NCBI RefSeq assembly: GCF_039654945.1
Contig: NW_027361840.1
Span: 8,742,001 to 8,806,000, forward strand
Direction: 5' to 3'
From: Dendrobates tinctorius
Lineage: Eukaryota
Length of the DNA: 64,000 nucleotides
Positions 5,411-59,687 of this stretch are shown here, piece after piece; positions within the stretch are counted from its first letter, which is position 1, and every line of letters starts with the position of its first letter. The notes below the pieces were generated by a model, which worked only from the letters and a program-made list of their open reading frames with translations, did no database searches and was not told the DNA's origin. Both the position numbers and the translations under genes were made by a program.

Positions 5411-5548
5411 CGGATCCAGTGCCGCCACACAGGCTGTGCAGCATCACCGCGCCGCTGTAACAATCCCGCCTCTCCACCTCTCTCCGGACAGCCTCCATGG
5501 TTCTGTGCAGCAGACTCTCCTCCGCGCTGCTCGTAATCTCCTGGTATC
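5411..5548 (-). CDS. Zeta (cryptic)-tubulin-like gene, coding exon 4
   Basis: tag|...|gtatgt, 138 nt, phase 1-1. Encodes (G)YQEITSSAEESLLHRTMEAVRREVERRDCYSGAVMLHSLCGGTGS(G), which carries the tubulin signature GGTGSG. Confidence 0.92.
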
Positions 5549-5829
5549 CTATTAATCAAGTGGAGAACGGCAACATGAGTGATGGCGGAGCTATATTATA
5601 GACACTACGTGGCCACACACATGGCAGCGGGCCCTGGGCCGTCCTGTGCGTAGCCCCTGCTCTGGACGGCTCCTTCTGCAAAACCCTGAGATGAGGGCTA
5701 CACAACAACGTGAGTCTCTGGCATCAGAGGTGATGATTCTCCATGGTGCCACATTGGGAACTTCGTCCTACGGTAACTGCAGGACTCTGTCCCATATACT
5801 TCACTGCATGTCACATGCGACCACAGCTC

Positions 5830-6250
5830 CATGACACATGCATGATGCAACTGTGCTACAGCGTGCTGCAACTGCTACAATGTGCGACAACTGTGCTACA
5901 GCGTGCTGCAACTGCTACAATGTGCGACAACAGTGCTACAGCGTGCTGCAACTGCTACAGCGTATTGCCACTGTGCTATAGAATGCATCAACTGCTACAA
6001 CGTACAACTGTGCTACAGAGTGCTGCAACTGCTAAAACGTGCAGCAACTGTGCCACAACGTGCTGTACCTGCTACAGTGTGCTTCTACTGTGTTACAACG
6101 TGCGGCAACTGTGCTACAACTTGCGAGAACTGCTACGACAGCGTGCTGCAACTGTGCTACAGAGTGCTGCAACTGCTACAACTATGCTACAACGTGCGGC
6201 AACTGTGCTACAACGTGCGGCAACTGTGCTACAACGTGCGGCAACTCCTA
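5830..6250. repeat. Irregular minisatellite (GTGCTACA/GCAACT motifs) in a tubulin intron
   Basis: Repeating tgtgctacagcgtgctgcaactgctacaa variants; this explains the Cys/Ala/Thr ORFs in three frames. Confidence 0.85.
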
Positions 6251-6294
6251 TAACTTGCCGTATACAGTACACAGCACCCCTGCCATCTTCTTAC

Positions 6295-6356
6295 CATACG
6301 CCCAGTTGTTGCCTCTTCCTCTCTGTCCCACGATGACATTGGAGTCTCTGAAGTAT
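6295..6356 (-). CDS. Zeta-tubulin-like gene, coding exon 3
   Basis: ttcag|...|gtaaga, 62 nt, phase 2-1. Encodes YFRDSNVIVGQRGRGNNWAY(G), the tubulin GxGNNWAxG motif. Confidence 0.92.
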
Positions 6357-7471
6357 CTGAATGAGAAGACACAAACGTTAGTCACAGCTGGACGAGGGTC
6401 GCGGTGCAGACCCCGGTGAGGACACCAGGGAGGGGGCTGCAGCATGGAGGCAGTGACGTCTGACGGTAATTATACCCCCACTTGGTGGGGATTTCCCCCC
6501 TTAGTGGGCTGTCCTAGTAAAGGTCTACGGAGGCGATATAGGGAGAGACGCCATTCTGGGCTGATTGCTGTATAACAAGTGACCTCCTCTGAGAACATAA
6601 GATGAGGACGCACTCGCCCCACAGCAACAATCAGAGCCGCTGAGCCCAGTGATTGGCTGCAGCAGTGATGCATGCTGCAACACGTCATCACCGCTGCAGC
6701 CAACACAAAGAGAGCAGACAAGGGAGGGCGAGTGCCGTTGTTATTTTACATGGTTGCCGGTGCTTGGGGTCCAGTGTAATTAACATGGGAAACCTCTCCT
6801 AGGGGCTGTCTATAGCCCCTTACTGCTGTGGCGCAGACGTCCGTCATGCTGATTCTATCGGGTATTGGTTCTGCATCCGTGCGATTAGCTGTCACTGATC
6901 AGCGAGCACACAGATCCCTACAGCTTAACCCTTCACATGCTGCAGTCAGTAGCGACTGCGCCGTCAGGTTCGCTATAGAAAAGGCGGAAGCCCACCGGCT
7001 GCATCTGATAATCACTGCAATGCAAAGGTATTAAATGGGGGATCGGGACCATTCAAGAACAAGTACCCAAGATGGACTACAATAAGATAAGAAAAAAGAA
7101 ATTATATAAAAGTAGGAAAATATAAAAATATCAAAATTTGGCATCGCTATGATTGAACTGACCCAGTTACCTTATCACGTATCCCGCACAGTAAACACTG
7201 CAAAAAAAATGCAGAATTGCTGTTTTCTCCCCATTCAGTCCATGAGAAAATATTAAATGTTTTTCAACACATTAGATCTTCCCAGAAATTATTCCATTAC
7301 ATTAGAATTTGTGCAGCAAACAAAAAACACTCGTGGCATCAGCTGATGAGTAATAAAAAACTAAAATAGCTGTGTCCTTTTAAGGGTGAACTTTACTGTT
7401 GCAATAGTATACACACCCAGGTACAGCTCCCCAGACCCCCGGTGATCAGCCATCGTGGGAACCCTACTTAC

Positions 7472-7567
7472 CCCCTCTTCACTTGCTGGCGGAGTTTTCG
7501 GATAACTTTAGGTTCTGTGTCCACACAGATGGCGTTAATGAATCCATCACGTGAGAAATACGGATAC
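7472..7567 (-). CDS. Zeta-tubulin-like gene, coding exon 2
   Basis: ctcacag|...|gtaagt, 96 nt, phase 2-2. Encodes YPYFSRDGFINAICVDTEPKVIRKLRQQVKR(G), the tubulin VDxEP motif. Confidence 0.92.
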
Positions 7568-7959
7568 CTGTGAGAGATGAGAATGCAGCACGCTCAGCTC
7601 ATCCGTACATGTGATCATTGGCAGCCGCTCCGCTTCAGAGCCGGAAGACCCCTCAGAAAATGGTCGAGGGGTAGGACAATATGGGATACGATGACTAAAT
7701 ACCTTTGGTCTGAAACGCGTCTGCCAGTGTGAACTCTCCTCTATAGGGTTAGTGGCTACTATGCTGTTATAATGGATTTTAAAAAATTTCAATAAACATT
7801 CATTTTATGGGATTTCTGCAGCTGGATCCTTTTTTCTTCACTCACCTGAAGACCCCTTCTCCCATAAATCAGCGGATACCATTAGGGGGCCACGGCCATT
7901 CTATTCCCTTAAAAGAGACTTACTGGAAAAAAACAGGCACAAGATGGTGGCCATCTTAC

Positions 7960-8054
7960 CGGTCAGCGTCGGCGAGGTTGCTACTGAGGATTTGCCACCA
8001 TTCCTGTCCGATCTGGTTGCCACATTGTCCAACCTGGAGCCAGATCAGCGACAT
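7960..8054 (-). CDS. Zeta-tubulin-like gene, first coding exon (exon begins at 8060, ATG at 8054)
   Basis: ttttttcccag|CTGGAAATG...CG|gtaaga. Encodes MSLIWLQVGQCGNQIGQEWWQILSSNLADAD(R), with the tubulin N-terminal GQCGNQIG motif. Confidence 0.93.
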
Positions 8055-8222
8055 TTCCAGCTGGGAAAAAAATGGATTAATTCTCACAGATTTTGGGGGT
8101 AAATGGATTAAAAACGGTAAAATTTTGATGTGTCAATATCGAATACTCAAGATTGCTGGACGGGCAACAGAACAGGAACATGAAGGAAGCATGCCAAATA
8201 TACAAAGGGTTTTCTACAGCCT

Positions 8223-11070
8223 TTAACCCCTTCAAGCTCTATGACATATCTGTAGCGGGCTCAAGATCCTTCATAGACAGCCAGCATCTGCCGGTAACAG
8301 CAATGAGCGAGCATTTAAGTCAGGGGCACACCAACATAACCGTGATGTACTGATAGGTTGTCGTGAGCTTGGGGACCTACTGGCGTCTTCCATGGCAGGT
8401 GTGGACGTACTGACGGTTTCCACGGCAGCTGAGAGCCTACTGACGGCTTCCACGGCAGCTGGAGACCTACTGACGGCTTCCACCGCAGCTGGAGACCTAC
8501 TGACGGCTTCCACGGCAGCTGGAGACCTACTGACGGCTTCCACGGCAGCTGGAGACCTACTGACGGCTTCCACGGCAGCTGGAGACCTACTGACGGCTTC
8601 CACGGCAGCTGGAGACCTACTGACGGCTTCCACGGCAGCTGGAGACCTACTGACGGCTTCCACGGCAGCTGGAGACCTACTGACGGCTTCCACGGCAGCT
8701 GGAGACCTACTGACGGCTTCCACGGCAGCTGGAGACCTACTGACGGCTTCCACGGCAGCTGGAGACCTACTGACGGCTTCCACGGCAGCTGGAGACCTAC
8801 TGACGGCTTCCACGGCAGCTGGAGACCTACTGACGGCTTCCACGGCAGCTGGAGACCTACTGACGGCTTCCACGGCAGCTGGAGACCTACTGACGGCTTC
8901 CACGGCAGCTGGAGACCTACTGACGGCTTCCACGGCAGCTGGAGACCTACTGACGGCTTCCACGGCAGCTGGAGACCTACTGACGGCTTCCACGGCAGCT
9001 GGAGTCCTACTGACGGCTTCCACGGCAGCTGGAGACCTACTGACGGCTTCCACGGCAGCTGGAGTCCTACTGACTGCTTCCACGGCAGCTGGAGTCCTAC
9101 TGACTGCTTCCACGGCAGCTGGAGACCTAATGGCGGCTTCCACGGCAGCTGGAGACCTACTGGCGGCTTCCACGGCAGCTGGAGACCTACTGGCGGCTTC
9201 CACGGCAGCTGGAGACCTACTGGCGGCTTCCAAGGCAGCTGGAGACCTACTGGCGGCTTCCACGGCAGCTGGAGACCTACTGGCGGCTTCCACGGCAGCT
9301 GGAGACCTACTGGCGGCTTCCACGGCAGCTGGAGACCTACTGGCGGCTTCCACGGCAGCTGGAGACCTAATGGCGGCTTCCACGGCAGCTGGGGACCTAA
9401 TGGAGCTTCCACGGCAGCTGGGGACCTACTGACGGCTTCCACGGCAGCTGGAGACCTAATGGCGGCTTCCACGGCAGCTGGAGACCTAATGGCGGCTTCC
9501 ACGGCAGCTGGAGACCTAATGGCGGCTTCCACGGCAGCTGGAGACCTAATGGCGGCTTCCACGGCAGCTGGAGACCTACTGGCGGCTTCCACGGCAGCTG
9601 GAGACCTACTGGCGGCTTCCACGGCAGCTGGAGACCTACTGGCGGCTTCCACGGCAGCTGGAGACCTACTGGCGGCTTCCACGGCAGCTGGAGACCTACT
9701 GGCGGCTTCCACGGCAGCTGGAGACCTACTGGCGGCTTCCACGGCAGCTGGAGACCTACTGGCGGCTTCCACGGCAGCTGGAGACCTACTGGCGGCTTCC
9801 ACGGCAGCTGGAGACCTACTGGCGGCTTCCACGGCAGCTGGAGACCTACTGGCGGCTTCCACGGCAGCTGGAGACCTACTGGCGGCTTCCACGGCAGCTG
9901 GAGACCTACTGGCGGCTTCCACGGCAGCTGGAGACCTACTGGCGGCTTCCACGGCAGCTGGAGACCTACTGGCGGCTTCCACGGCAGCTGGAGACCTACT
10001 GGCGGCTTCCACGGCAGCTGGAGACCTACTGGCGGCTTCCACGGCAGCTGGAGACCTACTGGCGGCTTCCACGGCAGCTGGAGACCTACTGGCGGCTTCC
10101 AAGGCAGCTGGAGACCTACTGGCGGCTTCCAAGGCACCTGGAGACCTACTGGCGGCTTCCACGGCAGCTGGAGACCTAATGGCTGCTTCCACGGCAGCTG
10201 GTGACCTAATGGCGGCTTCCACGGCAGCTGGGGACCTAATGGAGCTTCCACGGCAGCTGGAGACCTACTGACGGCTTCCACGGCAGCTGGAGACCTAATG
10301 GCGGCTTCCACGGCAGCTGGAGACCTAATGGCGGCTTCCACGGCAGCTGGAGACCTAATGGCGGCTTCCACGGCAGCTGGTGACCTAATGGCTGCTTCCA
10401 CGGCAGCTGGTGACCTAATGGCGACTTCCACGGCAGCTGGAGACCTACTGATGGCTTTCACGGCAACTGGGGACCTACTGACGACTTCCACAGCAGCTGG
10501 AGACCTACTAATGGCTTCCACGGCAGTTGGAGACCTAATGACGGCTTCCATGGCAGCTGGGGATTTACTGGCGGCTTCCATGGCAGCTGGGAATTTACTG
10601 GCGGCTTCCATGGCAGCCATCTTGGGCCTGCTGTGAAGCTGCAGGCTGAACTCCATAGAAGGCTGCGTACTGCAGGGTCCAGAACAGATGACCGCAGAAT
10701 CCAGTCCCCTATGGGGTCTAAAATAAAGTCAAATACAAAAAAAAAGAAAGAAAGGAAAAGGTTTTTGCTGTTAATCGCTGTTCTTTGCTCAGCGCAGCCA
10801 CCTCCACCCAAAAAAAAAGTAAAAGGCGACCGGAATGCTCTATGCGCCACGCGGAGGACGCGCCTCGCAGAAACACATTTTTTCACCATCACATTAGGAA
10901 TTGTTTCCTCTTTCTCGGTACATTATATGGTAAAACTGAAGCAGCCATTCACAACTATGACACTTCCTACAAAAGTGAAAAACAACAACAGGCCTCATGA
11001 GGCGAGAGAGGGAAAAGGAAAGAGGTCCTGGCTTCAAAAACGGAAGTTGTCTGTGTCCTTCAGCAGTTAA
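8223..11070. mobile_element. Degenerate TTAA-type (piggyBac-like) non-autonomous element hosting the 30-bp array
   Basis: Starts TTAACCCCTT at about 8223. The right end (...gtccttcagcagttaa) resembles the ...aaggggttaa ends of the copies at 36106 and 40118. Confidence 0.4.
8372..10618. repeat. 30-bp tandem array (about 75 copies) in tubulin intron 1
   Basis: Unit GGAGACCTACTG(A/G)CGGCTTCCACGGCAGCT; homogeneous core, degenerate edges, two 29-bp units. Confidence 0.98.
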
Positions 11071-11130
11071 TAATTATCAATTTATTTACGCTAAAAACCA
11101 CTGGACACAATAAGTTAATGTTATTGATAA

Positions 11131-11448
11131 GTTTCCCATAGCAACCAATCATATTTCCATCAATGGCTGCTGTCACACCTGCTTCTGTATTGTATAAATA
11201 AAGTTTATTGAAAGACAGACAATGGAGTCCATAGCAACCAATCAAAACATGTCTTTCATTCCGTATTCTTCAACGGCAGCAGAAGAGCTGGATTCGGATT
11301 GGTTGCTGTATGCGGGCGCTGTACTAACTTTCATTGTGTATAAATAAAGTTTATGGAAATTATTCGCGACCAATCAGTACGCTTCTTACATTTTCTAACT
11401 GAAGGGAAAAATATATGAGCTGGCATCTGATTGGTTGCCATAGGTAAC
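11131..11448. promoter_or_regulatory. RFX X-box-like motifs coupled to CCAAT boxes
   Basis: GTTGCCATAGGTAAC (11434-11448) fits GTNRCC-N0-3-RGYAAC; GTTTCCCATAGCAAC (11131-11145) is a near match. Both have an adjacent CCAAT/ATTGG. Confidence 0.45.
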
Positions 11449-11479
11449 AGGACTAGCTCTGAATAACATCGGGGCTGTG

Positions 11480-11930
11480 TGAGGCCCGGTTGGCGGCCAC
11501 GGAGCCCCGAGAGTCGTGCGCTCACCTGTGTGCGGGGCCGTGCGCTGTCCTCGCCGCTGGGGGTGCAGTCTCCTCCCCTCCCCGTGTTACAGTTGTGACT
11601 GGAGGAAGTGGACGAGTTTGCGCCATTTCCGCTCCGTGTTCTGGGGAGGAGGAGCCGATCAGCCGGAGGCCGCAGAGCCGCGATCCTGCCGGGAAACCTT
11701 GCACCTTCCTCCGGCCTAGACTGGTAACTTGTCCCCGTCGTGTCTGCGGCCCTAACAACTCCGGACAAGCCGCGGCCTGTGGTAAGCGCGCAGCCCGAAA
11801 CACTCTCCAAGTAGGCGGCCTTCCTAGAAAGCGGGAGCCGGGGACGCACAGGAGTGAGAGGCCGGAGGGAGAGCAGCGGCATCATGGCCTGAGAGCGGAG
11901 GACGGAGCCGCCGCCGCCATTGTCCATCCT
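11480..11930. promoter_or_regulatory. CpG-rich bidirectional promoter with putative non-coding first exons of the tubulin gene (-) and setd2 (+)
   Basis: Non-repetitive CpG-dense patch. Minus-strand donor CAG|GTGAGC at 11526/11525; plus-strand donors CTG|GTAACT (11724) and GTG|GTAAGC (11782). ETS GGAAGT at 11604-11609 and YY1-like CGCCATTT at 11621-11628 lie between them. Both first coding exons are preceded by splice acceptors, which implies upstream UTR exons. Confidence 0.7.
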
Positions 11931-11979
11931 GTCTGCAGCCCAGAATCACTGCTGAAAGGGGGAAGCCCTGCTAAAGACC

Positions 11980-12950
11980 GTGCACCCGCGGAGTCACTGC
12001 ACGCCAGTCTCTGCACCCCCAGAGTCACTGCACCCCCGGATTCACTGCACCCCAGGTCTGTGCACCCCCCGGATTCACTGCACCCCTGGTCTCTGCACCC
12101 CCGAAGTCTCTGCACCCCCGGTCTGTGCACCCCCGGTCTGTGCACCCCCGGTCTGTGCACCCCCGGTCTGTGCACCCCCGAAGTCTCTGCCCCCCGGTGT
12201 CTCTGCACCCCCGAAGTCTGTGCACCCCCGGTCTGTGCACCCCCGAAGTCTCTGCACCCCCGGTCTGTGCACCCCCGAAGTCTCTGCACCCCAGGTCTGT
12301 GCACCCCCGAAGTCTCTGCACCCCAGGTCTGTGCACCCCCGAAGTCTCTGCACCCCCGAAGTCTCTGCACCCCCGAAGTCTCTGCACCCCCGAAGTCTCT
12401 GCACCCCCGAAGTCTCTGCACCCCCGAAGTCTCTGCACCCCCAGAGTCACTGCACCCCCAGATTCTCTGCACCCCCGAAGTCTCTGCACCCCAGGTCTCT
12501 GCACCCCCGAAGTCTCTGCACCCCAGGTCTGTGCACCCCCGAAGTCTCTGCACCCCAGGTCTGTGCACCCCCGAAGTCTCTGCACCCCAGGTCTGTGCAC
12601 CTCCGAAGTCTCTGCACCCCAGGTCTGTGCACCACCCCCAGAGTCACTGCACCCCCAGGCCTGTGCACCACCCCGAAGTCACTACATGCTCAGGTCTGTG
12701 CAACACCCAAAGACACTGCACCCCAGTTCCGTGCTCCCCCAAAATCACTGCTGGAAGGGAGAAGCTCTACTAACGTCGCTGCACCCCAGAGTTACTGCTG
12801 CAATGGGGAAGCCCTGCTAGAGTCTGTGCACCGCACCCCAAAGTCACCACCAGCCAATGAGAGGGAAGCCCTGCTAAAGTCTGCACCCCCAAATCACTGG
12901 TGGAACGAGATAAACTCCTTCTGAAATCTGCACCCCCAAAGTCAAGGACT
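11980..12950. repeat. 16-17-bp minisatellite in the first setd2 intron
   Basis: Unit GTCTCTGCACCCCCGAA / GTCTGTGCACCCCCG, decaying towards about 13.2 kb. Confidence 0.95.
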
Positions 12951-13784
12951 GATGAGAGGGGAGACTTGCTGGAGACTGCACCTCAGGTCAGTGCATTCCC
13001 AAAATCCCTGGAGCCGTGCTGAAATCTGCACCCAAAGTCTCTGTTCCCCAAAACCACTGCTGAAAGCAGCGCCCTGCTGAAAAGTCTGCACCCCAAATCT
13101 GTGCACTGTCACCAGCGGCTGATGGAAGGAGAGGGAGGCTGCACCCTAAAATCACTGATGGAAGGAGGGGATCTCTATTGAGCAACACTTCTGCACCATA
13201 ATATCTAGGAAAATCTATTGTGCCCCCCAAAGTCATCAGGACCTTTGTCAGATTGTAGTTGAGGGCCTTGAACACAAATCTTTAGGGAACCCTGCTGTGT
13301 GCACCCTGATATCAGGAATTAATCCTTTTGTAAGCACCTTAATATCTGGAACTCCTTCACCCCGATACCTTAAAGCTGTTTGCAGTTCGCTGCGCTCAGT
13401 CTCTAGAGGCTCTCTGTGTGCACCCTAATATTTGCCATTGATAAGGACTTCTTCACTCTCTTGAAGCTTCAGCATCCCTCTGAAGGTGTTTTTCCTGCAC
13501 CCACCCAGTCTGAGGATATGTGAGCCCCCCCAATATCTGGAGATAACATTATCTGGAGCTCCTTCACCCCAATATCTTTGGATCATCTTATCTGGAGTTA
13601 TTTTCTGCGTGAACCCCAATATTTGACATTGACGACGTCTCTAGGATCTGTTCTCCCTCTGGATCCCTGTTTCCAGGGGTGTCCGGTGATTGACCCATTT
13701 GAAGTCCTCCTTTCCTGCACCCCGTCTCTCTGGAGTCGCTCCCCCACCTCTCCACAGGCTGGATGCCTTGCTCCACCACTGACA

Positions 13785-13819
13785 ATGGGGGATTTCTATG
13801 ATCCTGAACACCCAACTGA
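13785..13819 (+). CDS. setd2: SETD2 first coding exon (exon 13758-13819)
   Basis: ccacag| at 13757. ACAATGG in strong Kozak context encodes MGDFYDPEHPT(E), matching the vertebrate SETD2 N-terminus; donor GA|gtaagt. Confidence 0.92.
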
Positions 13820-19657: not shown

Positions 19658-20965
19658 CTGAACTCCCCACAAACCCCAAATAAACAGCAGTCTGTGTCTC
19701 CATGTATATGACTGAGCCCGGAGCTGAACTCCCCATAAACCCCAAATAAACAGCAGTCTGTGTCTCCATGTATATGGCTGAGCCCGGAGCTGAACTCCCC
19801 ATAAACCCCAAATAAACAGCAGCCTGTGTCTCCGTGTATATGGCTGAGCCCGGAGCTGAACTCCCCATAAACTCCAAATAAACAGCAGCCTGTGTCTCCC
19901 TGTATATGGCTGAGCCCGGAGCTAAACTCCTCACAAACCCCAAATAAGCAGCAGCCTGTGTCTCCCTGTATATGGCTGAGCCTGGAGCTGAACTCCTCAC
20001 AAACCCCAAATAAAAAGCAGCCTTTATCTCCCTGTATATGGCTGAGCCCGGAGCTAAACTCACAAACCCCAAATAAGCAGCAGTCTGTGTCTCTATGTAT
20101 ATGGCTGAGCCTGGAGCTGAACTCCCCATAAACCCCAAATAAACAGCAGCCTGTGTCTCCCTGTATATGGCTAAGCCCGGAGCTGAACTCCCCATAAACC
20201 CCAAATAAAGAGCAGCCTGTGTCTCCATGTATATGGCTGAGCCTGGAGCTGAACGCCCCATAAACCCCAAATAAACAGCAGCCTGTGTCTCCCTGTATAT
20301 GGCTGAGCCCGGAGCTAAACTCACAAACCCCAAATAAGCAGCAGCCTGTGTCTCCCTGTATATGGCTAAGCCCGGAGCTGAACTCCCCACAAACCCCAAA
20401 TAAACAGCAGCCTGTGTCTCCCTGTATATGGCTGAGCCCGGAGCTGAACTCCCCACAAACCCCAAATAAACAGCAGCCTGTGTCTCCCTGTATATGGCTG
20501 AGCCCGGAGCTGAACTCCCCACAAACCCCAAATAAACAGCAGCCTGTGTCTCCCTGTATATGGCTGAGCCCGGAGCTGAACTCCTCACAAACCCCAAATA
20601 AGCAGCAGTCTGTGTCTCCCTGTATATGGCTGAACTCCCCTCAAACTCAAATAAATGGCAGCCTGTGTCTCCCTGTATATGGCTGATCCCGGAGCAGTAC
20701 TCTCCACAGACCCCCGACCCCCCCCCCCCCCCCCAAAAAAAAAAAAAAAGAAGAAAAAGCAGCCTGTGTCTCCCTGTATGTGGCTTATTCCGGAGCTGAA
20801 CTCACTCCCCACAAACCCCAAGTAAATGGCAGCTTATGTCTCCCTGTATAGGACTGAGCCCGGAGCTGAACTCCCCACAAACCCCCCCCCCCCCCCCCCC
20901 CTCGAAAAAAAAGAAAAAAAGTCAGCCTGTGTCTCCATGTATATGGCTTAACCCAGAGCTGGACT
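19658..20965. repeat. About 66-bp tandem repeat
   Basis: Unit AAACCCCAAATAAACAGCAGCCTGTGTCTCCCTGTATATGGCTGAGCCCGGAGCTGAACTCCCCAT; 22-aa period in the spurious ORF. Confidence 0.95.
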
Positions 20966-22170: not shown

Positions 22171-22242
22171 GTAGTTTTCAACTTCTGAGGTGAAGTCTTC
22201 CATTATTTGCTGTTTGTTCGGTGTCTGCACATTGTGTGTTCG

Positions 22243-23420
22243 GGACGGGGTCTCTCTGTGTAGCTGCTTGCTGAGCGGTGAGGACGGGGTCTCTCCGTGT
22301 CGCTGCTTGTTGAGCGGTGAGGATGGGGTCTCTCCGTGTCGCTGCTTGCTGAGCGGTGAGGACGGGGTCTCTCCGTGTCGCTGCTTGTTGAGCGGTGAGG
22401 ACGGGGTCTCTCCGTGTCGCTGCTTGCTGAGCGGTGAGGAGGGGGTCTCTCCGTGTCGCTGCTTGCTGAGCGGTGAGGACGGGGTCTCTCCGTGTAGCTG
22501 CTTGCTGAGCGGTGTGGACGGGGTCTCTCCGTGTCGCTGCTTGCTGAGCGGTGAGGGCAGGGTCTCTCCGTGTAGCTGCTTGCTGAGCGGTGAGGACGGG
22601 GTCTCTCCGTGTCGCTGCTTGCTGAGCGGTGAGGGCGGGGTCTCTCCGTGTTCCTGCTTGCTGAGCGGTGAGGGCAGGGTCTCTCCGTGTAGCTGCTTGC
22701 TGAGCGGTGTGGACGGGGTCTCTCCGTGTCGCTGCTTGCTGAGCGGTGAGGACGGGGTCTCTCCGTGTCGCTGCTTGCTGAGCGGTGAGGACGGGGTCTC
22801 TCCGTGTCGCTGCTTGCTAAGCGGTGAGGGCGGGGTCTCTCCGTGTCGCTTTTTGCTGAGCGGTGAGGGCGGGGTCTCTCCGTGTCGCTGCTTGCTGAGC
22901 GGTGAGGGCGGGGTCTCTCTGTGTCGCTGCTTGCTGAGCGGTGAGGGCGGGGTCTCTCTGTGTCGCTGCTTGCTGAGCGGTGAGGGCGGGGTCTCTCTGT
23001 GTCGCTGCTTGCTGAGCGGTGAGGGCGGGGTCTCTCTGTGTCGCTGCTTGCTGAGCGGTGAGGGCGGGGTCTCCGTGTCGCTGCTTGCTGAGCGGTGAGG
23101 GCGGGGTCTCTCCGTGTCGCTGCTTGCTGAGCGGTGAGGGCGGGGTCTCTCCGTGTCGCTGCTTGCTGAGCGGTGAGGGCGGGGTCTCTCCGTGTCGCTG
23201 CTTGCTGAGCGGTGAGGGCGGGGTCTCCGTGTCGCTGCTTGCTGAGCGGTGAGGACGGGGTCTCTCCGTGTCGCTGCTTGCTGAGCGGTGAGGGCGGGGT
23301 CTCTCCGTGTCGGTGCTTGCTGAGCGGTGAGGACGGGGTCTCTCCGTGTCGCTGCTTGCTGAGCGGTGAGGGCGGGGTCTCTCCGTGTCGCTGCTTGCTG
23401 AGCGGTGAGGGCGGGGTCTC
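22243..23420. repeat. 39-bp tandem repeat (about 30 copies)
   Basis: Unit GGGGTCTCTCCGTGTCGCTGCTTGCTGAGCGGTGAGGAC/GGC. Confidence 0.97.
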
Positions 23421-31483: not shown

Positions 31484-32331
31484 TTAAGGCTATGGATTCT
31501 TTAGAGCATACAAGGTTCAAACTTATTAAAGTTTTAAGCTTTAATAGGATGTGGAAATAAAAAGTGACATACAAACATGCAAAACAGTTATAAAAATAAA
31601 AGGGAGAAACTTACCGAAATATCAAAACTTTGCAGTCTGGTATTCTGCTCCCTGAGGGGGGAGGAATATGAAATGGATTACACCAGCTTGACTGTCCCTC
31701 AGTCTGTGAACATCTTTCTTTGTGTAAAGGCCTAATTTATAGATTTAGCCTGGAGATCAGATTTCTAGACCAGCCTCTCATGTTAATAATCTAATTCCTG
31801 GTTTGAGACTGGACCATGGCTACTTATCAATGAATACATTTAGGTTCTTGTCTTAGATTGTCAGGCTGCAAATAGGTCTCATTTGTCTTCTGTCTTCAAG
31901 GGATCCCAGGTGTGAAATGTTTCCAATTTTGTGTGTTCCCAGGAAAGCCCCCTGGGGTCTGAGACCAGGAAAACTACCTTTTCTCAGGATAATATGTTAT
32001 CACCTTTGTGAGACCTGCAGCTTAAGGACAGATGCTAGTTAACTGCCGGACATATATCACCTACAAACACATTTCCACTACATCCATCAATACATTTTAT
32101 ATCTTCTATCTGTTGCTGCATTCCTGAGAATTTGGTGTTTTCATTCATGTGCAAATGATCAGTAAGTGCTCTGGGTGTGGTCAAGAACTTCCCAACACTC
32201 TACCTCCACAGGGAAATCACTTTGGGAGACAGTGACTCCTTAAGTGCTGTCACACCCTTTACAAAGGGTTTTCTAGTACCTGGACAGCCACCTTTGAAAA
32301 TAAAAGCTCCTCCTATCCCCCCACTTGCATA

Positions 32332-32921
32332 GTTCCAGCGATGTTGGAGCCCGTGTGGCGCATCGTTCCAGCGATGTTGGAGCCCGTGTGGCGCATCGTT
32401 CCAGCGATGTTGGAGCCCGTGTGGCGCTTCGTTCCAGCGATGTTGGAGCCCGTGTGGCGCATCGTTCCAGCGATGTTGGAGCCCGCGTGGCGCATCGTTC
32501 CAGCGATGTTGGAGCCCGCGTGGCGCATCGTTCCAGCGATGTTGGAGCCCGCGTGGCGCATCGTTCCAGCGATGTTGGAGCCCGCGTGGCGCATCGTTCC
32601 AGCGATGTTGGAGCCCGCGTGGCGCATCGTTCCAGCGATGTTGGAGCCCGCGTGGCGCATCGTTCCAGCGATGTTGGAGCCCGCGTGGCGCATCGTTCCA
32701 GCGATGTTGGAGCCCGCGTGGCGCACCGTTCCAGCGATGTTGGAGCCCGCGTGGCGCACCGTTCCAGCGATGTTGGAGCCCGCGTGGCGCACCGTTCCAG
32801 CGATGTTGGAGCCCGCGTGGCGCACCGTTCCAGCGATGTTGGAGCCCGCGTGGCGCACCGTTCCAGCGATGTTGGAGCCCGCGTGGCGCACCGTTCCAGC
32901 TATGTTGGAGCCCGCGTGGCA
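32332..32921. repeat. 33-bp tandem repeat (about 18 copies)
   Basis: Unit GTTCCAGCGATGTTGGAGCCCGCGTGGCGCATC. Confidence 0.97.
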
Positions 32922-33229
32922 CTGTCCGTTATTGGGCAGAGGCATTCTCTTGATTGAGCCTTGGACAAGCAGAAGTAACTCGGCAGCCCCATCAGTGTCT
33001 GATTGGCCGCAGCGCCCACGTGGCAGAACATTGCCGCAGGACACCTGACGACACCATTGCTGTAGACACGCTGTGTGGGAAGTGGGTATCTGTTATTTTA
33101 TGACTACTTTTATAAAGAGGTTCTCCAGGGAGACTCATTTGCACATGACAGAAAATGCTAAGGACTCAGGAAGCAGCAACATTTGATCTAAAGGTGTTGA
33201 TGAATTTACATTTCACATACCTTCATGCC

Positions 33230-43059: not shown

Positions 43060-44830
43060 TATACGCTGGGAAGCCAAGACTCTCTGGCTTCCTCTATAAG
43101 TAGGAGGAGCAGGACTCTCAGGCTGTTTCATGAGTAGGTGGGATGAGGAGGACTCTCAGGGTTTCTCTGAGTAGGGGAGAAGATCAGGATTCTCCAGCTT
43201 TCTTTGTGTGTATGCAGGAGGTGCAGGACTCTCAGGCCTTCTCTGTGGGTAGGCGGGAGGAGCAGGGGGGTCTCATGGCTTCTTTCAGTATGCGAGATGA
43301 TCAGGACTCAGGCTTTCTCTTTGAGTAGGTGGGAAGAGCGGGACTCTCAGGCTTTCTCTATGAGTAGACGGGAAGTGCAGGATTCTCCAGGTTTTCTCTG
43401 TGAGTAGGTGAAATGATCAGGACTCGGGCTTTCTTTGTGAGTAGTTGGGATGAATAGGTCTCAGGCTTTTTCTGTGAGTAGGTGGGATGATCAGGATTCG
43501 GGCTTTCTCTGTGTGTAAGCGGGAAGAGTAGGACTCTCAGGCTTTCTCTGTGTGTAAGCGGGAAGAGTAGGACTCTCAGGCTTTCTCTGTGTGTAAGGGG
43601 GAAGAGTAGGGCTCTCAGGCTTTCTCTGTGTGTAAGCGGGAAGAGTAGGGCTCTCAGGCTTTCTCTGTGTGTAAGCGGGAAGAGTAGGACTCTCAGGCTT
43701 TCTCTGTGTGCAAGCGGGAAGAGTAGGACTCTCAGGCTTTCTCTGTGTGTAAGCGGGAAGAGTAGGACTCTCAGGCTTTCTCTGTGTGTAAGCGGGAAGA
43801 GTAGGACTCTCAGGCTTTCTCTGTGTGTAAGCGGGAAGAGTAGAACTCTCAGGCTTTCTCTGTGTGTAAGCGGGAAGAGTAGGACTCTCAGGCTTTCTCT
43901 GTGTGTAAGCGGGAAGAGTAGGACTCTCAGGCTTTCTCTGTGTGTAAGCGGGAAGAGTAGGACTCTCAGGCTTTCTCTGTGTGTAAGCGGGAAGAGTAGG
44001 GCTCTCAGGCTTTCTCTGTGTGTAAGCGGGAAGAGTAGGACTCTCAGTCTTTCTCTGTGTGTAAGCGGGAAGAGTAGGACTCTCAGGCTTTCTCTGTGTG
44101 TAAGGCCTCTTTCACACTTCAGTTTTTTGCATCAGTTCAAATCCGCCAAAAAGTCATACAAGCGGATCCGTTGTTAACTGATGTGAACGGATGGCACAGG
44201 ATTCGTTTTTAGACGGATCCTGAAAATGCGGAAATTGAGAGAGAGAGAAAGCGAGAGAGAGAGAATTTTTTTTTTTTTTTTGTCCGGCACCCAGAAAGAA
44301 TTTCGGGTTAAATGAGTGTCTGGAGGATCCGCCAGAGGAAAAAACGTTACAAGCTCCCTTTTTAAATCTTTGAGGATGTTGGCGGATCCTCAAAAAAAAC
44401 GGATGCAACGGACAGCAATCCGCCATTAATGCAAGTCAATGGGGAAAAAAACGGATCCTCAAAAAAAATTTGAGGATCCGTTTTTTCAAAACCTGGCGGA
44501 TTGTGACTAATTGTAAAAAACGGAAGTGTGAAAGAGGCCTAAGCGGGAAGAGTAGGACTCTCAGGCTTTCTCTGTGTGTAAGCGGGAAGAGTAGGACTCT
44601 CAGGCTTTCTCTGTGTGTAAGCGGGAAGAGTAGGACTCTCAGGCTTTCTCTGTGTGTAAGCGGGAAGAGTAGGACTCTCAGGCTTTCTCTGTGTGTAAGC
44701 GGGAAGAGTAGGACTCTCAGGCTTTCTCTGTGAGTAGGCAGGATGTGTACTACAGGAGTCTCCAGGCTTTCTCTGTGAGTAGTCAGGACTCGGGCTTTCT
44801 CTGTGATTTAGCAGGAGGAGTAGGACTCTT
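43060..44830. repeat. 39-bp tandem repeat (homogeneous core 43501-44735)
   Basis: Unit GCTTTCTCTGTGTGTAAGCGGGAAGAGTAGGACTCTCAG. Confidence 0.95.
44104..44539. mobile_element. PIF/Harbinger-type MITE inserted in the 39-bp array
   Basis: TAA-GGCCTCTTTCACACTTC ... GAAGTGTGAAAGAGGCC-TAA; same group as 16664-17147. Confidence 0.9.
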
Positions 44831-45394: not shown

Positions 45395-48300
45395 GCCAAG
45401 AGCGATGGATCGTCAAAAGGGTTTGGAAAATCGGCAGGCGCATTTAAGGGTATTTCCTCAAGTAGATTTCTACCTAAAGGAACCAAATCAAAGGTGAACT
45501 TGGAAGAACAGGGGAGGCAGAAGGTGTCCTTCAGTTTCAGCTTCACAAAAAAAACCTTCCAGAACAGATTACTGACACCTTTAGTCAGCGACAAGCAAAA
45601 TGAGCCGCAGAGTAATCCGCTCGCACTCGGCTCCGCAGAGCAAATCTCAAAGCTCAAGATGGACTTTGTGGAATCTACTGGTGGAGTCATGGAAGTTTCT
45701 CCACCAAAGCCCAAGGTGGAACTGGGAAAAATTCATTTCAAAAAGCATCTTCTAAGCGTTACAAGCAAACTACCAGCACCCCAATCTCCTCCACCCCCAC
45801 CTCCGCCACCTCCTCCTATAATATCTGCCCCCATATCCCACTCACACTCACCCCAAGAGGCACAGATAGAACGCATGAAATCCTCTCCAGATGTTGAAGT
45901 GGTGCCATTTCCAGCAAACACATCTTTCACAAAGTCACCGTTGAAAGAACATACAAGCTCTGCTTCCTCAAAAGAACGGTTATCGCCATCCCCATCATCA
46001 AGCAGAACTGGCACAAAGGAAAGCAGAGAGTGGTCTTTAATTTCTGTTGTAGAAATCCCGAGCACTCAGATGGTCGTCGACAAAGTGGAGACGACTGCGA
46101 TAAAAGAATATTCCCATATTGGGAAGGAAGAGAAGAGTTATACCAGTGTGCAAAGCGTCAAATCTAATCCTAGCCCAGAAAAACCCAGATCCAAATCGTC
46201 TCACTCAGAAACTATAGTTGTTGGCTCAGAGTCTGATGAAGATTCAGTCCAGACCTCCTCCAGCCATCGCTCCCATGAGTTAAAACACGCTTCCAGTAAA
46301 GAAAGGGACTCTAAAAGGTGCTCTATGTCCTTGAGAAGCGAGGACAGTGGGAAGTATACGTCATCAAGATCGAGGTCTGGAAAGGATCAGAAACATTCTG
46401 GTTATTCCAGGTCAGACAGAGACTCCAAATATTCGTCGTCTTATTCTCACTGTAGGTCAGACCGTGAACGCAGGAGAAGCAAATCCCGTTCCAGGTCACG
46501 ATCAAGGTCTAGATCGGACAGAGGTCCAAGAAGTAGCTTATCATTTTCTAGATCTGAACGTTCACATCATTACGAGTCTGAGCGGAGATATCACAGGAGT
46601 TCTCCTTATCGAACGAGATACTCACGCTCCTATGCAGACAGTAGGGCCAGGGACAGTTCTGATTCTGAAGATGATTATCGAAGATCCTATTCCAGACCTA
46701 GCGATTCCCGACATCCTCCATCATCTTCTCATTCTTACAGAGAAACCAGGATGATATCGTCTTCACACTCAAAATACGACAAAGATCTCAAATTCGATTC
46801 TTCGCATTATTCTGATCGCAGAGGAACTACGACGTCCAGCAGAACTGGAAAAGATAGCAAGTCTCCTGCCGGAGAATCTTCTAGGAGAGGTTCTCCTCCA
46901 AAAGAAGCGAACATTAAACATGGGTCCTCACATTGGAGGGTCGAGAACTTAAAGTCCATTTTCCCAAAATCCTCAGATTCCAAATCGGACTCTGTGACTT
47001 CAGGAAGAAAAATTTCTAAATGGGATTTGGAAGAAAGACCGGTCCCGAAAGATGAGCGTAAAACGGTCAAAAAAGATGAAAGTTCCCCATTGAACATACC
47101 CGTCCACAAGAAGGCAGCTTCTCCTCTCTTTTATAGGCATAAGGTGACTTCTACCATCGAAAACAAAATGGTGACTAGTTTTGATCCTAACTTGGAAGAC
47201 ACTGAGCAGTTTATAGATGATCAGCAAAGTAACAGTTCCCCCCGAACCAACGATGATCTCCCCCATGGGCGAGGATGGCATTTCGTTACTCTCAGTTCTA
47301 CGGAAAATTTTCACTCTGAGGATCCGAACGAAACACCCGACTCTGAAAACTGTAATTCAGACGTTCCTGAAATGAGCTTTGATAGCAGTGAAACTGAACA
47401 ACTTGATAAGTCTGATGAGGACCTCGGGGCGCATGCGCTTAGCAGGCTGTATGCCGTCTCAGAAGACGGTGAGAAAATCCCTCCAAGTGAAGCACATCGC
47501 TGTTATGTTACAGTGCATGAAGATTCCATGTCGCCATCAGAGTCAAAAAACCACCTAGAAAGCATTACCAAAGACTCACGTCCTTGTCATGATTCCAACG
47601 AGACGGACTGTAAAACACCGGACCCCGGGGACGAATTCTGTCATTCCACGGGCCGGGAGCAAATCGGTGACAATCACACTTCTGTAATTCACCTTCAGCC
47701 TGAGCCTCGAATAACAAACTTAATTTTGCAAAAGTCCAGTCTAGCTATGAGCTTCTTTGCTGAGCGGGATTTACCTTCTGAAACTACTGCCCCCAAAATC
47801 TGTTATCTACAAAGTACACACAGTGAGGCGCCAGCTGAAGAAACCCCAGAGAAGAACAAAACTAGTGACAAAAATGACTGTGTCCCCAATGAAGTGACTG
47901 TGGGAGAAGTCCTGCCGTCGTCACCACAAGTTTGCAAATCAAAAAATTCTTTAGCGATCAAAAATTCTTCAACAGGTAATGTGGAAGAAAACGAAAAGTC
48001 TTCTGCTTCTCTTGAAATTGCGGCTGAATGGATCGAAGTCCATGTAGAAAATGAGTTTTCCAAGCAGGAGCTCGACACGTGTGAGGTCCTCCACACTGAG
48101 GCAGTGGAGGAGACTATTAATGATGGATCACAGTTACCCTCTGACAGCATGGTGCCGTCCATGAACTTCATCAGCGCCGTCCAGGCGTATTACTCTGACA
48201 GCGAAGAGCGTGAAAGCGCCAATAGTGAATCGGAGGATACAGATTCTGATGACAGTGGCCTCCCCAGGAATCGTTTGCAATCGGTCGTGGTGGTTCCTAA

Positions 48301-50667
48301 AACCTCTATACTAACCATGGAAGAATCTATAATGTCTCCAGTCGCTCCAGAAGAAGGTCAGCAGTTTACATTACTCATGGAGGAAGGTCAGACATCTATA
48401 ACTATCAAAGATGGTGAAATGTCGTCAATGTCCGTGGAAGTAGCGGAACCTTCTGCAATTAACGCGGATGATGCAAACCTAGCTGAATTTAGTATGAATA
48501 GTGCTAAAATACCTGCAGTGACCATGGAAAAACTTTCTATATTTACCATTGAAAGCATGAATCCAGCTGCGGTGACCATGGAAGATGCAGGACCAGCTGC
48601 GGTGACCTTGGAAGGTGCAGGACGAGCTGCGGTGACCTTGGAAGGTGCAGGACGAGCTGCGGTGACCATGGAAGGTGCAGGACGAGCTGCGGTGACCATG
48701 GAAGGTGCAGGACAAGCTGCGGTGACCATGGAAGGTGCGGGACCAGCTGCGGTGACCATGGAAGGTGCGGGACCAGCTGTGGTGACATTGGGAGGTTCAA
48801 AACTGGCTGCAGTGACCAAGGAAGGTGCACGACCCACTGCAGTGACCACGGAAGGTGCACGACCCACTGCAGTGACCATGGAAAGTGCACGACCCGCTGC
48901 AGTGATCATAGAAGATGCAAAACCAGCTGCAATAACCAAGGAAAGTGCACGACCCACTGCAGTGAGCATAGAAGCTGCAATAACTAAGGAAAGTGTAGGA
49001 CCAGAAGCAGTGACCATGGAAGGATTGAGACCAACAGCAGTGACTATAGAAAGGTCAAGACCGACATCGGTAACTATGGAGGATGCAGGCCTTGCTGTAT
49101 TGAGCGTGAAGGGCGCCAGACCGACTGCGTTGGCTGTGGAGGGCAAAAAACTGACATCACTTATCATTGAGGGTGAAGGCCTGGCTGCTGTGACCATAGA
49201 AAGTGTGAGACCGGCTACGGTGACCATGGAAGGTTCAATACCGACTGCAGTAATCGTAGATGATGCAACACCGGCAGTGGTGACAATGGATAGTGTGACA
49301 CCGGCCGTGGTAACCATGGAAGGGGCAAGACCAACTCTAATATCCACAGAAGAAGAAAAGCCATTGGCATTGATCATGGATGAAGTGAAGTCATTATTAC
49401 GGATCATGGATATTAAACCATCGGCATTATCTGCCAAGGAAGCACAAACGTCATCCTCATTCAGGGAAGGTGCAGATCTGTCTCCGATAACCATGGAAGA
49501 ACCTAAAATCCATATATTATCCATTGAGACAATTCAAAATGATCATAATCTTCAAGAAAGCAGATCAGAACACTTTAAGGAGAGAAACTCTGTGCACATC
49601 CCTATCCCCAGCACGCCTGCCATACTGGAAGATAACAGAAAGAACGTTCCCGTTCCAAAAACAGAGAACCAGCACCCTTCTTCCGATTCCAATGTCAGCA
49701 CCAGCCGTCCTGTACCCATAAAACCTAAAAACAAAGGCAAAGCCCTCATAGAGGGTAACGCAGCACAAGAGAGCCAAATGCTTGGCCCAGCCAAACCCAA
49801 GGAGCCAGAAAAGCCTGCAACGCCCGCCGCTCCGTCCATACACCCCACAGTAGAAAAGCAGCTGGTGGCGAGCTTTGTAGAGAGGCCGGACAGTCGGCAC
49901 CAGGGACCCGGATACAATCGAGCCCCCGGGCACGGAGACTACTCGCGAGTGGATGGATTCCAGGCAGCAGAAGACTTGTCTGACCTAGGATGGGACTTCT
50001 CTCAGCCTGAAAAGCCGAGCAGCACTTACCAGCCCCCGGACAGTAGCTACATGTACTTTTGCTACCAACAAGGAAGCAGCGGCCACGATCCTTCACACAA
50101 TTATGTCGGTGACAACGGATATTGGAATTCTAGCTACCCCAGCAAGCACGACGACAAGTACAGCAAGCCGTCCGGCCAACTCCCCGACTCCGTCACCCAC
50201 TGCTATAATGAAGATGACGACGATGAAGAGTACGATTACTCCTGGAATAAGGATCACATGCACGAGATCGGACACCATCCTAAAGCTTTCCCCAATAAAT
50301 CCAGGGAGAGCAGCTCGGTGCAAGCGCATGAGATCAGCAGCAACTCCATAAAGGACCACGGACCGCGCACTGACAAGAGAGAGACGCTGGCCCGCGAGCG
50401 GTCAGACATGAAGGAACGAGGACCACCTAAGAAAAGGAGGCAGGAGTTAGAGAGCGACTTGGAGAACGATGCTGAAGCGCTAGAGAGAAGGAAAATGAAG
50501 GCTGAAGCCGGTCTAGTGGACTCGCCAGCCTCAAAGCATGGCCACACGGGACCCATCTGCTGCATGGAGGACTTCAGGGACCCACAGCACTGGAAGGATT
50601 GCTACAAGCTGGGGAAGATGCCGACATACTTCGACCTGATAGAGGAGAATGTCTACCTGACTGAGAG
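45395..50667 (+). CDS. setd2: SETD2 giant exon (5,273 nt; N-terminal disordered region up to the start of AWS)
   Basis: ttttgtag|GCC... open to ...ACTGAGAG|gtatgg. SETD2 motifs include RFLPKGTKSKVNLEEQGRQKVSFSF, ELGKIHFKKHLL, GSESDEDSV, the RS region, RNRLQSVVVVPK, GWDFSQ and YFDLIEENVYLTER. Confidence 0.97.
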
Positions 50668-50712
50668 GTATGGCCAGCACTTACTGCACCTACCCCAAAT
50701 CTGCTGATTGTG

Positions 50713-51309: not shown

Positions 51310-51550
51310 GTAACTGCTCCTGTGCCCGGCACAATCTCGCCATCTGTAGATCTGCACCTCTGACCACTGTTTTCTGTAGAGTCAATCTGTCCGCGCTTGA
51401 CCAGTGTGCACATGTCTGTAAAAATTCGGGATTGCCATCAGTCCCCAAATAATTTTGTTCAAAAAACTGGAAATCACCAATGAGGAGAGAAGGGGATGCG
51501 GCTGCAGCTTCTCATTGTGAGATGAGCTAAGCATTCTGTGAGAGGGAAAC

Positions 51551-52637: not shown

Positions 52638-53325
52638 GGATATCAGAAGTGCATGTGGCCAAGAGAACAAGCAACTCATCAGCTGGAGCCAGTAGGTCTG
52701 GCAGCATGGGGGTCTCTGCACAAAGCAAGAGAAGGTACCCCAATGTATTCAAGGTTATGTTCACACGTAGGGTTTTTTCATGTGGCTTTTAGTGGTTTGC
52801 ATGAAACATATAGGCTATGACCAGAAAGCTGCAACAGAAGTTTTAAGTGTGTTTTGGTGCTAACACATTTTTGATCTCCATGGTGTAAAACTGCAGTAAA
52901 AACACTCCTAGAATTGCTTTGCTGCTTTAAGAAAAAAAAAAAAGCACCACAGGTCACAAACCGCAAAGGAAAAAATCCGCCTTGTGACTCAGACTTTATA
53001 GAATTGTTTCAGATTGCAGCTGCTGTAAACCGCTTTTTATTCCGCATTCAAAAACGCTGTGTGTGAACAATCTCTTATTTCCTGTCTCACCGGGGGTATT
53101 AATATGAAATCTGCGTCTGGTGGGGGATGCGAGACACTGCGCTCAGCGAGGAGGCCCCCCGAGAGCGACAGCTAGGGTCTGCAGTTGTATATTACAAATG
53201 AAGCCCATTATAAGGACTTATTAGGAATTAGCGGATTGTTGTAGATCTGCATGCGCATGAGGGAGAGCCGAGCATATGGATCTGTGTGCCGCTCGTCTCA
53301 TGACTCTTCTCCTGTTATTTCCCAG

Positions 53326-53454: not shown

Positions 53455-54053
53455 GTAAGCTTATGGTAGATCCACCTGCCCTGAGGGGTTAACAGGGCCC
53501 GGCTGGTATTGGGGTTGCTAGCCAAAGTTGTCTGCCATTTCTGCATTCTGAAGAGCCGCCTGATCTCACCCATGGAACATTCGATTTGGTCTCAATCTTC
53601 ATCTAATTACTTCCAGTCCACCCGTAGACTTACAATGTTTGGGTCAGCCGCATGTTACTCAGCAACGATGATCTGAAGCATCACCGCCTAACAAGCGGTG
53701 GCCTGAGATCGGAGCGGGGAGCCGCTGTCAGACACAGCCAGACTCCACATAGAGAAAGCAGAGAGGCTTTATTATCACCTCTGCCTTCCTGGTCACGCTA
53801 TACACCACGCTGGACAAGCGTTCCTTCTCCAGACCAAGCAATCGTGTGATCGCCAGGTGCTTGGGGGGGCGCAGGAGCAAATTATTACAAATGTTAGGCC
53901 CCACGCATGATGACAAAAAAAAACCACAAAAATGATTTATGTATATTCAAAGGAGAAAAATATTAAATCTCATGAAAACCGCAAAAAACATCAAAATGTA
54001 CCAGGAACGAGGAAAATGTCTGTCTTGGATGATTCTGGATTTCCTTCCCACAG

Positions 54054-54177
54054 GAACACGTTTGTGCTGGAGTACTGCGGAGAGGTACTGGACCACAAGG
54101 AGTTCAAAGGCCGCGTGAAGGAGTATGCCCGCAGCAAGAACATCCACTATTATTTCATGGCTCTGAAAAATGATGAG
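54054..54177 (+). CDS. setd2: SETD2 exon (SET), 124 nt
   Basis: NTFVLEYCGEVLDHKEFKGRVKEYARSKNIHYYFMALKNDE. Confidence 0.97.
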
Positions 54178-54209
54178 GTGAGAGGAGTAGTCTGGGGGGC
54201 AGTAATAGA

Positions 54210-59275: not shown

Positions 59276-59687
59276 AGTTTTACATTTGCGTCTTTGTGCG
59301 CAAGTAGAAACGCATGCAAAAACGCACATGCGCTTTTGTTTTGTTAAAACGCTTGCGCATAAAAAACGCAGTTTCTAGACATGTTTACTCTTGAAACGCA
59401 TGCATATGCATGTCCATGCGCACATCTGCGTTCCCATAGACTGTAATGCGTTGTTTTGACGCATTCCGTGCACAAGCGTACGCATGCGTTTTTTTGACGC
59501 CTTTGGGCGGACCCAAAAATGCAACATGTTTCGTCCTGCGCGTCTAGACGCACACCTGGAAAAAACGCATGCGCACGAAAATGCAGACAAACGCATGCAA
59601 ACACAAGACCATGCATACGCCATGTTAAACATAGGTACGCATGCGCACGGATGCGCTGCGCACAAAAACGCTAATGTGAAACCAGCC
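59272..59687. mobile_element. Palindromic MITE next to a (TA)n tract
   Basis: ...TACATTTGCG ... CGCTAATGTGAAACCAGCC-TAA; internal inverted symmetry. Confidence 0.7.

Follow-up and report, generated by a model that had tools for sequence, protein, structure and literature searches.

Introduction

Bidirectional promoters, as Trinklein and colleagues in 2004 and Lin and colleagues in 2007 are said to have described them, lie between head-to-head gene pairs whose starts are less than 1 kb apart; reportedly, they are enriched in GABP/ETS, YY1 and NF-Y/CCAAT motifs and are mostly TATA-less. Here, we describe a locus of Dendrobates tinctorius in which a centriolar tubulin gene and SETD2, coding for the H3K36 trimethyltransferase, are transcribed away from each other. 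The locus lies in a window of 64,000 nucleotides, by which we mean the whole stretch of DNA analysed (NCBI RefSeq assembly GCF_039654945.1, contig NW_027361840.1, positions 8,742,001 to 8,806,000, forward strand). Like the bidirectional CpG-island promoters of other vertebrates, it combines two divergent genes, a single island, motifs of the ETS, YY1 and CCAAT types, a TATA-less core and conservation across species, and as bidirectional CpG-island promoters are common, the architecture is in itself ordinary. It differs from them in the distance between the two ATGs, 5.7 kb, in that the transcribed zones may overlap, and in that RNA ties one of the two start zones to its gene. We consider it, on balance, probable that one CpG-island bidirectional promoter serves a zeta-type tubulin gene and SETD2; RNA shows the tubulin half of this arrangement, and we infer the SETD2 half.

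Zeta-tubulin is the basal-foot tubulin of Xenopus multiciliated cells, and its described distribution fits that of the tubulin family represented in the window (PMC4741028, PMC11156431). We found no paper linking tubz1 to SETD2, or to a bidirectional promoter.

Results and discussion

A head-to-head gene pair with one CpG island

The tubulin exons are on the minus strand and the SETD2 exons on the plus strand, with their 5′-ends facing and the start codons 5.7 kb apart, which bears out the head-to-head pair put forward in a note made from the sequence alone (hereafter, the original prediction). The limits given there were accurate, position 7960 being the final base of the tubulin ATG exon and position 13819 the final base of the SETD2 ATG exon, and the acceptor expected before each ATG exon is present in the sequence, at 8062-8061 for tubulin and at 13756-13757 for SETD2. 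Between the two ATG exons we found two minisatellites, a 30-mer repeated 75 times (8370-10617) and a 17/32-mer array (11980-12751), and between these a single non-repetitive patch rich in GC and CpG, also as predicted. The patch extends from about 11400 to 12000, with a GC content of 0.60-0.68 and a CpG observed/expected ratio of 0.68-0.96, and is the sole CpG island in the 5.7 kb. The distance between the ATGs would thus be explained by non-coding first exons in both genes and by gaps filled with minisatellite DNA.

The tubulin gene begins with a spliced non-coding exon in the island

Logan contigs of four runs (X4, X5, X9 and X21), picked for words of the patch and of the tubulin exons, were placed on positions 10600-12100. 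Contigs of X21 and X4, which belong to two studies, cease to match the window at 11526 and then continue with 30 letters that are unique in the window, at 8031-8060. The junction 11526/8060 delimits tubulin intron 1 (8061..11525, minus strand, GT..AG, 3,465 nt), and its donor, CAG/GTGAGC at 11525, is the top-scoring minus-strand donor in 10600-12100. In the X4 contig, the 426 letters past the junction correspond to exons 2-5 (397 nt) and a little extra. Thus, the minus-strand donor named in the original prediction is proven, and the tubulin gene does start inside the CpG patch, with a spliced non-coding exon 1 whose minimum extent, judged from contig pieces and their loose ends, is 11526..11559 (minus strand); the same X4 contig continues to 12007. 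No contig of X4, X21 or X9 was found on the unique intron sequence left of 11526, though 11526-12007 was covered, and the contig material of these three runs therefore behaves as RNA. The share of words found in five further runs (0.74-0.80) fits coverage of 11526-11960, and that found in X5 (0.39) is the share expected of its 224-nt contig. Tubulin transcripts begin with this non-coding exon, in the sole non-repetitive CpG island, and are spliced from 11526 to 8060 over an intron swollen by minisatellite DNA.

Logan contigs can be chimeric, and the run type 'RNA' is a guess; hence, the junction could be an assembly artefact, produced by chimeric contigs or contaminating DNA, with the tubulin gene starting beside 8060. 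We find this scarcely credible, as the same junction, with canonical GT..AG borders, was recovered in two runs of two studies, the donor block (11522-11534) shows no change among three frogs, independent NCBI models in Ranitomeya variabilis, Hyla and Bufo put a first exon in the same island, and an acceptor is found just before the tubulin ATG, at a distance of 3-20 nt, in seven species out of seven. RNA evidence now fixes exon 1 and intron 1 of a centriolar tubulin whose annotation is poor.

On the tubulin strand there is an upstream ATG at 11626, within AAATGGCG, which opens a 38-codon open reading frame (ORF) that is out of frame in the window. Translation starts at this ATG or further upstream in the models that NCBI gives for R. 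variabilis, Hyla sarda and Bufo, resulting in "isoforms" of 453-546 aa. We considered exon 1 as a real N-terminal extension of the protein and rejected it, because the ORF at 11626 is out of frame and the long open frame present here differs in frame from that of the Bufo model. Since the conserved DNA is read in different frames in the window and in Bufo, the conservation is at the level of DNA and exon 1 is a non-coding leader. Database versions of the frog tubulin (proteins P0137, P0142, P0147 and P0127) carry 30-125 extra N-terminal residues, which are translations of the GC-rich first exon (window 11526-11927, minus strand). Several such "isoforms", with their long N-terminal extensions, are probably mis-annotated 5′ leaders.

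Two details concern the contigs themselves. X5 also has a contig of 243 nt on 10600-10687, at the right edge of the 30-mer array in tubulin intron 1, which may be intron-derived RNA or library DNA, so that it is uncertain whether X5 is pure mRNA. Over 11699-11977, the contigs of 'organism B' (X4, X9) match the window except for five substitutions, 10 nt inserted after 11890 and 3 nt deleted at 11907, which suggests that they come from a close relative or a divergent population rather than the sequenced individual.

A compact conserved core within the island

Alignment of three frogs delimits a conserved promoter core of 126 bp (11585..11710), 96.8% identical to R. variabilis and 91.5% identical to Bufo. 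The left flank (11440-11521) shows 45.1% and 38.7% identity to the same two species, and the next 100 bp or so (11711-11812) show 95.1% and 49.0%; non-coding DNA of the window aligns with R. variabilis at about 77-84% identity, as expected of another hyloid, probably dendrobatid-like, frog. A second conserved block (11835..11873) consists of two runs, 11835-11847 and 11854-11873, which are invariant in the three frogs. Within the core are an ETS-type GGAAGT (11604-11609) and a YY1-type CGCCATTT (11621-11628); both are consensus matches, both had been noticed in the original prediction, and both are invariant across the three hyloid frogs. The YY1-type motif reads AAATGGCG on the tubulin strand, that is, it is in the sense orientation for tubulin. 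No TATAAA was found in 11450-12000. With a SETD2 start in it as well, the island would act as a TATA-less bidirectional CpG-island promoter, the core of which (11585-11710) includes the GGAAGT and CGCCATTT motifs and has hardly changed among hyloid frogs. When the intergenic DNA was aligned with that of Xenopus tropicalis, only the SETD2 ATG exon aligned, and conservation at the level of motifs can therefore not be extended beyond hyloid frogs.

Does SETD2 also start in the island?

To the right of the core, the contigs of X5 (11645-11868) and X9 (11648-12007), which come from different organisms and different studies, start within 3 nt of each other and have no loose ends. These ends fit a plus-strand start near 11645, and the region 11645..12007 is accordingly listed here as a putative first exon or 5′ transcribed zone of SETD2, presumably on the plus strand. 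We regard a SETD2 start in the island as likely, if unproven, because of the coincident contig starts at 11645 and 11648, because this is the sole CpG island, because the SETD2 acceptor at 13757 is conserved (it is kept in three hyloid frogs), and because the corresponding intervals are short in both Bufo and gar. The Bufo SETD2 ATG is only 455 bp from the coding start of the tubulin model, itself inside the island; in X. tropicalis, a single CpG patch is present between the two ATGs. SETD2 would then initiate in the island on the plus strand, near 11645, and its ATG exon would open at the strong, conserved acceptor, at 13758. The X4 contig is unbroken from 11526 to 12007; given a plus-strand start at about 11645, this would require tubulin exon 1 to reach at least about 11675, and hence the two transcription units to overlap or abut. 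By our proposal, the two initiation zones probably abut or overlap by tens of bases.

Not all of what had been predicted for the SETD2 side stood. Donors had been proposed on the plus strand at 11724 and 11782; in our ranking of plus-strand donors for the 10600-12100 region they come second and third, after 12987. The GTs exist and are kept in R. variabilis, but the X5, X4 and X9 contigs read through both, and they are not kept in Bufo. Nor was it borne out that both first exons and both transcription start sites fit within 200-260 bp, as had been thought: the RNA contigs span 11526 to at least 12007, a transcribed zone of at least 480 bp, so that the two units more probably overlap or abut than stand neatly back to back. 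The invariant run 11854-11873 opens at a GT (GGA/GTGAGA) and, on conservation alone, 11854 could be a candidate for the donor of SETD2 exon 1; here too the contigs read through.

Several observations weigh against a start of SETD2 in the island, or against a promoter common to the two genes. Among the contigs placed on 10600-12100, none leads from the island to 13758, the SETD2 acceptor, and as all three contigs pass through 11724, 11782 and 11854 unspliced, no donor for SETD2 exon 1 emerges from them. Logan contigs are unstranded, and the RNA right of 11645 could belong to a long tubulin exon 1: the X4 contig runs from the tubulin exons to 12007, and the first exon of the Bufo model reaches the equivalent of about 11880. 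It should be kept in mind that one contig may merge overlapping transcripts of two genes. In X. tropicalis, the SETD2 ATG has no AG in the approximately 85 nt upstream. The transcription-factor sites are consensus matches only. Lastly, the 10 kb upstream of the tubulin ATG contain no SETD2 ATG exon and no CpG island in the turtle, the gharial or the possum.

Some of these observations would be expected if the two genes had separate promoters, the island driving tubulin only, from an exon 1 that can start at or beyond 12007, and SETD2 starting near 13758, inside the second minisatellite or past it; the transcripts covering 11645-12007 would then be the tubulin 5′ leader, or promoter-upstream antisense RNA. 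A single X4 contig that starts in the tubulin coding exons, passes 11526 and reaches 12007, the extent of the Bufo first exon and the lack, in any contig, of a plus-strand splice out of the island are all in line with two promoters, as is the similarity to Bufo that extends for about 60 nt upstream of 13758. However, an exon belonging to tubulin only would not break at 11645/11648, where the X5 and X9 contigs start without continuing to the left; the stretch 12760-13757 is CpG-poor (as judged by eye) and ends in a strong conserved acceptor; and in Bufo and gar only 0.5-1.6 kb separate the two genes. Moreover, broadly expressed genes such as SETD2 usually have CpG-island promoters. We therefore consider separate promoters unlikely, and a start of SETD2 in the island, as set out above, the better account.

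X-box and CCAAT elements in tubulin intron 1

Composites of an X-box and a Y-box are the RFX and NF-Y elements of ciliary genes and of major histocompatibility complex (MHC) class II promoters. A motif scan of the window found four CCAAT-type GATTGGTTGC motifs, in alternating orientation, at 11131..11448, in the part of tubulin intron 1 next to exon 1. All four matches to GATTGGTTGC in the window fall in 11141-11438, where 0.34 would be expected in the 64 kb; a cluster occurs at the same place in R. variabilis (three copies) and in Bufo (nine, alternating), and nowhere else in those loci. The copy closest to exon 1 forms a composite with a palindrome that resembles an X-box (GTTGCC ATA GGTAAC); the composite occupies 11429..11448, about 80-95 nt into the intron (80-110 nt over the three frogs), and the palindrome itself 11434-11448. 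The palindrome is the sole match to the X-box consensus in the 64 kb, a match that alone is not unusual (about 0.8 are expected per 64 kb), so that its weight comes only from its position and conservation; the composite is nearly invariant in three hyloid frogs.

As in the X-box/Y-box elements, a GTNRCC-N3-RGYAAC sequence abuts a CCAAT box, here in three frogs and beside a cilia-related gene; in contrast to them, the element is not upstream but within the first intron, some 90 nt from its start, belongs to an array of tandem repeats of approximately 130 bp, and is known as a sequence match only. The composite is a reasonable candidate for a predicted input, from cilia or the cell cycle, which may act on the tubulin side. 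Under our hypothesis, the X-box and the CCAAT composite and array in intron 1 would add such an input to the tubulin arm, and this might let a cilia-biased gene and a broadly expressed one share a single core promoter. The 126-bp core and the intronic X-box/CCAAT element are marked by their conservation as reporter-ready targets.

The same elements can be read in another way, in which the island is essentially the promoter of SETD2 and tubulin, lacking a core promoter itself, uses the divergent, upstream antisense initiation of the SETD2 promoter, with tissue specificity supplied only by the intronic X-box/CCAAT elements and by splicing. The compactness of the conserved core, the occurrence of the composite and of the CCAAT array on the tubulin side only, where they are conserved in hyloid frogs, and the sense orientation of the YY1-type motif for tubulin agree with this idea, whereas X. 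tropicalis and gar lack these motifs at the sequence level; besides, it refines the shared promoter proposed here rather than excluding it. Taken as an explanation of its own, it seems to us improbable.

It may only be speculated that the two genes form a co-regulated chromatin-cytoskeleton module, as the original prediction suggested with the reported methylation of tubulin by SETD2 in mind.

Age of the pairing

Loci were fetched around orthologous tubulins; the synteny set is without Hyla, Pseudophryne, Mustelus, Microcaecilia and Anolis, for whose proteins there was no gene record. The two genes are head to head, with the same SETD2 ATG exon facing tubulin, in R. variabilis (L001; annotated coding starts 1.4 kb apart), in Bufo gargarizans (L005; the 455 bp given above, the tubulin model there starting in exon 1), in X. 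tropicalis (L002; 2.6 kb, the neighbour having AWS, SET, WW and SRI domains) and in the spotted gar (L006; 1.6 kb). The conservation of the divergent arrangement, raised by the original prediction, thus holds for these four species, and was not seen, within 10 kb, in the turtle, the gharial and the possum. Since both gar and frogs have the genes head to head, the pairing predates the split between ray-finned and lobe-finned vertebrates. That a shared core promoter has kept the two genes divergent for more than 400 million years, with the X-box/CCAAT composite and CCAAT array serving as a directional switch through which RFX-type ciliary or cell-cycle factors boost the tubulin arm alone of an otherwise housekeeping promoter, is a proposal we regard as doubtful. 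With a pairing at least as old as the last ancestor that gar and frogs share, the locus is nonetheless one in which to study how cilia-biased and broadly expressed genes share a promoter, and a starting point for asking what became of the promoter when placental mammals lost zeta-tubulin.

The gene downstream of tubulin varies. In the possum and the gharial it is KIF9, placed tail to tail with tubulin (L004 43350-52262 and L007 24451-32715); in X. tropicalis there are cathelicidin genes (L002 25288-33392), and in gar a gene of the F5/8-type-C class and an ankyrin-repeat gene (L006 23810-29295).

The tubulin gene

The window covers tubulin exons 1-5, which hold the first 130 codons of a gene for a protein of about 420 aa, the remainder lying beyond position 1. 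Exon 2 (7960..8060, minus strand; ATG at 8054-8052) is bordered by an AG acceptor (8062-8061), proven by the spliced RNA contigs, and by a GT donor (7959-7958). Exons 3 (7472..7567) and 4 (6295..6356), also on the minus strand, were placed by their AG/GT borders and by tblastn; exon 5 (5411..5548, minus strand), coding for the region of the GGTGSG loop, was placed by its AG/GT borders, in-frame translation, a match to the Pfam Tubulin family (E 4e-8) and tblastn to frog orthologues. Together, the four coding exons (5411-8060) encode 130 N-terminal residues of a tubulin, in which the motifs GQCGNQIG and GGTGS occur, and exons 2 and 5 match Pfam PF00091 (Tubulin/FtsZ GTPase domain).

With exon 5 as the query of a library-wide phmmer search, the best near-full-length matches were proteins of about 420 aa, mostly named "tubulin delta chain-like" by their source, and tubulins in the PDB match the family only at about 1e-31. 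Over the 130 N-terminal residues, identity is 96.9% with Ranitomeya variabilis, 85% with Bufo gargarizans, 74% with X. tropicalis and 58% with the spotted gar. A word search with the shark member of the family gave, among the 120 best relatives, sharks, Polypterus, gar, coelacanth, caecilians and many frogs including X. tropicalis, along with turtles, lizards, the gharial, seven marsupials and many invertebrates; placental mammals were absent from these 120. As this distribution matches that of zeta-tubulin, we call the gene zeta-type, a name that is put forward on species distribution and synteny, and not on a tree with labelled delta and epsilon sequences. The gene shares with zeta-tubulin (TUBZ1) membership of the same family of about 420 aa as the X. 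tropicalis protein P0136 (the 74% identity over 130 aa noted above), the same position beside SETD2 and a distribution without placental mammals; it differs in that its name comes from distribution and synteny, and in that just the first 130 codons are in the window.

The SETD2 gene

The SETD2 ATG exon (13758..13819, plus strand; ATG at 13785) encodes MGDFYDPEHPTE and is preceded by a long pyrimidine tract and the AG at 13756-13757, an acceptor read from the sequence, and followed by GTAAGT. Further downstream are a giant exon (45395..50704, plus strand), recognized by an ORF scan as a 1,770-codon open frame, with an acceptor and matches to N-terminal fragments of pangolin SETD2, and a SET-domain exon (54052..54183, plus strand) which, in a phmmer comparison with the PDB, matches SETD2 chains with an E of 3e-22, the next-best methyltransferase being at 2e-5. 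The syntenic neighbour in X. tropicalis is a protein of 2,997 aa with AWS, SET, WW and SRI domains and the same first coding exon. The gene is thus like SETD2 in its conserved MGDFYDPEHPTE start, its giant exon and its SET-domain exon; it differs in that the ATG exon follows an acceptor, which calls for a non-coding first exon, and in that a coding exon is needed between the ATG exon and the giant exon. The phase is 2 at the end of the ATG exon and 0 where the frame of the giant exon opens, and joined directly the two would run into a stop after 33 codons; because the two do not join in frame, a small coding exon, of length 3n+1, must sit in the 31.5-kb gap between 13819 and 45395, and tblastn found none there. 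In a search of proteins predicted from RNA contigs, the giant exon, represented by its first 300 aa, had only four distant matches, with no frog fragments, and the open frame around the ATG exon had nothing at E ≤ 10.

Tandem repeats and a transposase-type open frame

The two minisatellites between the ATG exons were delimited with Tandem Repeats Finder (TRF). The first, with its 75 copies of a 30-bp unit in tubulin intron 1, is part of a segment (8294-10741) without counterpart in R. variabilis, where about 10 bp are found instead, and unaligned in Bufo; the comparison with R. variabilis makes the array a recent, lineage-specific expansion of 2.2 kb beside a promoter. The second, which separates the CpG patch from the SETD2 ATG exon and at whose edge the contigs break, is much shorter in R. 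variabilis. Bufo has a different minisatellite in the same tubulin intron, just upstream of exon 2 (L005 11571-11816), with a unit of 22-23 bp and a CCAAT in each.

Tandem repeats are unusually abundant in the locus in general: within the SETD2 introns, long minisatellites appear as repetitive open frames at 20264-20683, 22175-23095, 32236-33045, 43491-44174, 51526-52817, 61766-62437 and 62649-63998. Also in a SETD2 intron, at 59675-60835, is a frame of 387 codons with the helix-turn-helix (HTH) of a Sleeping Beauty/Tc1-type transposase (Pfam HTH_SB and HTH_Tnp_Tc3_2).

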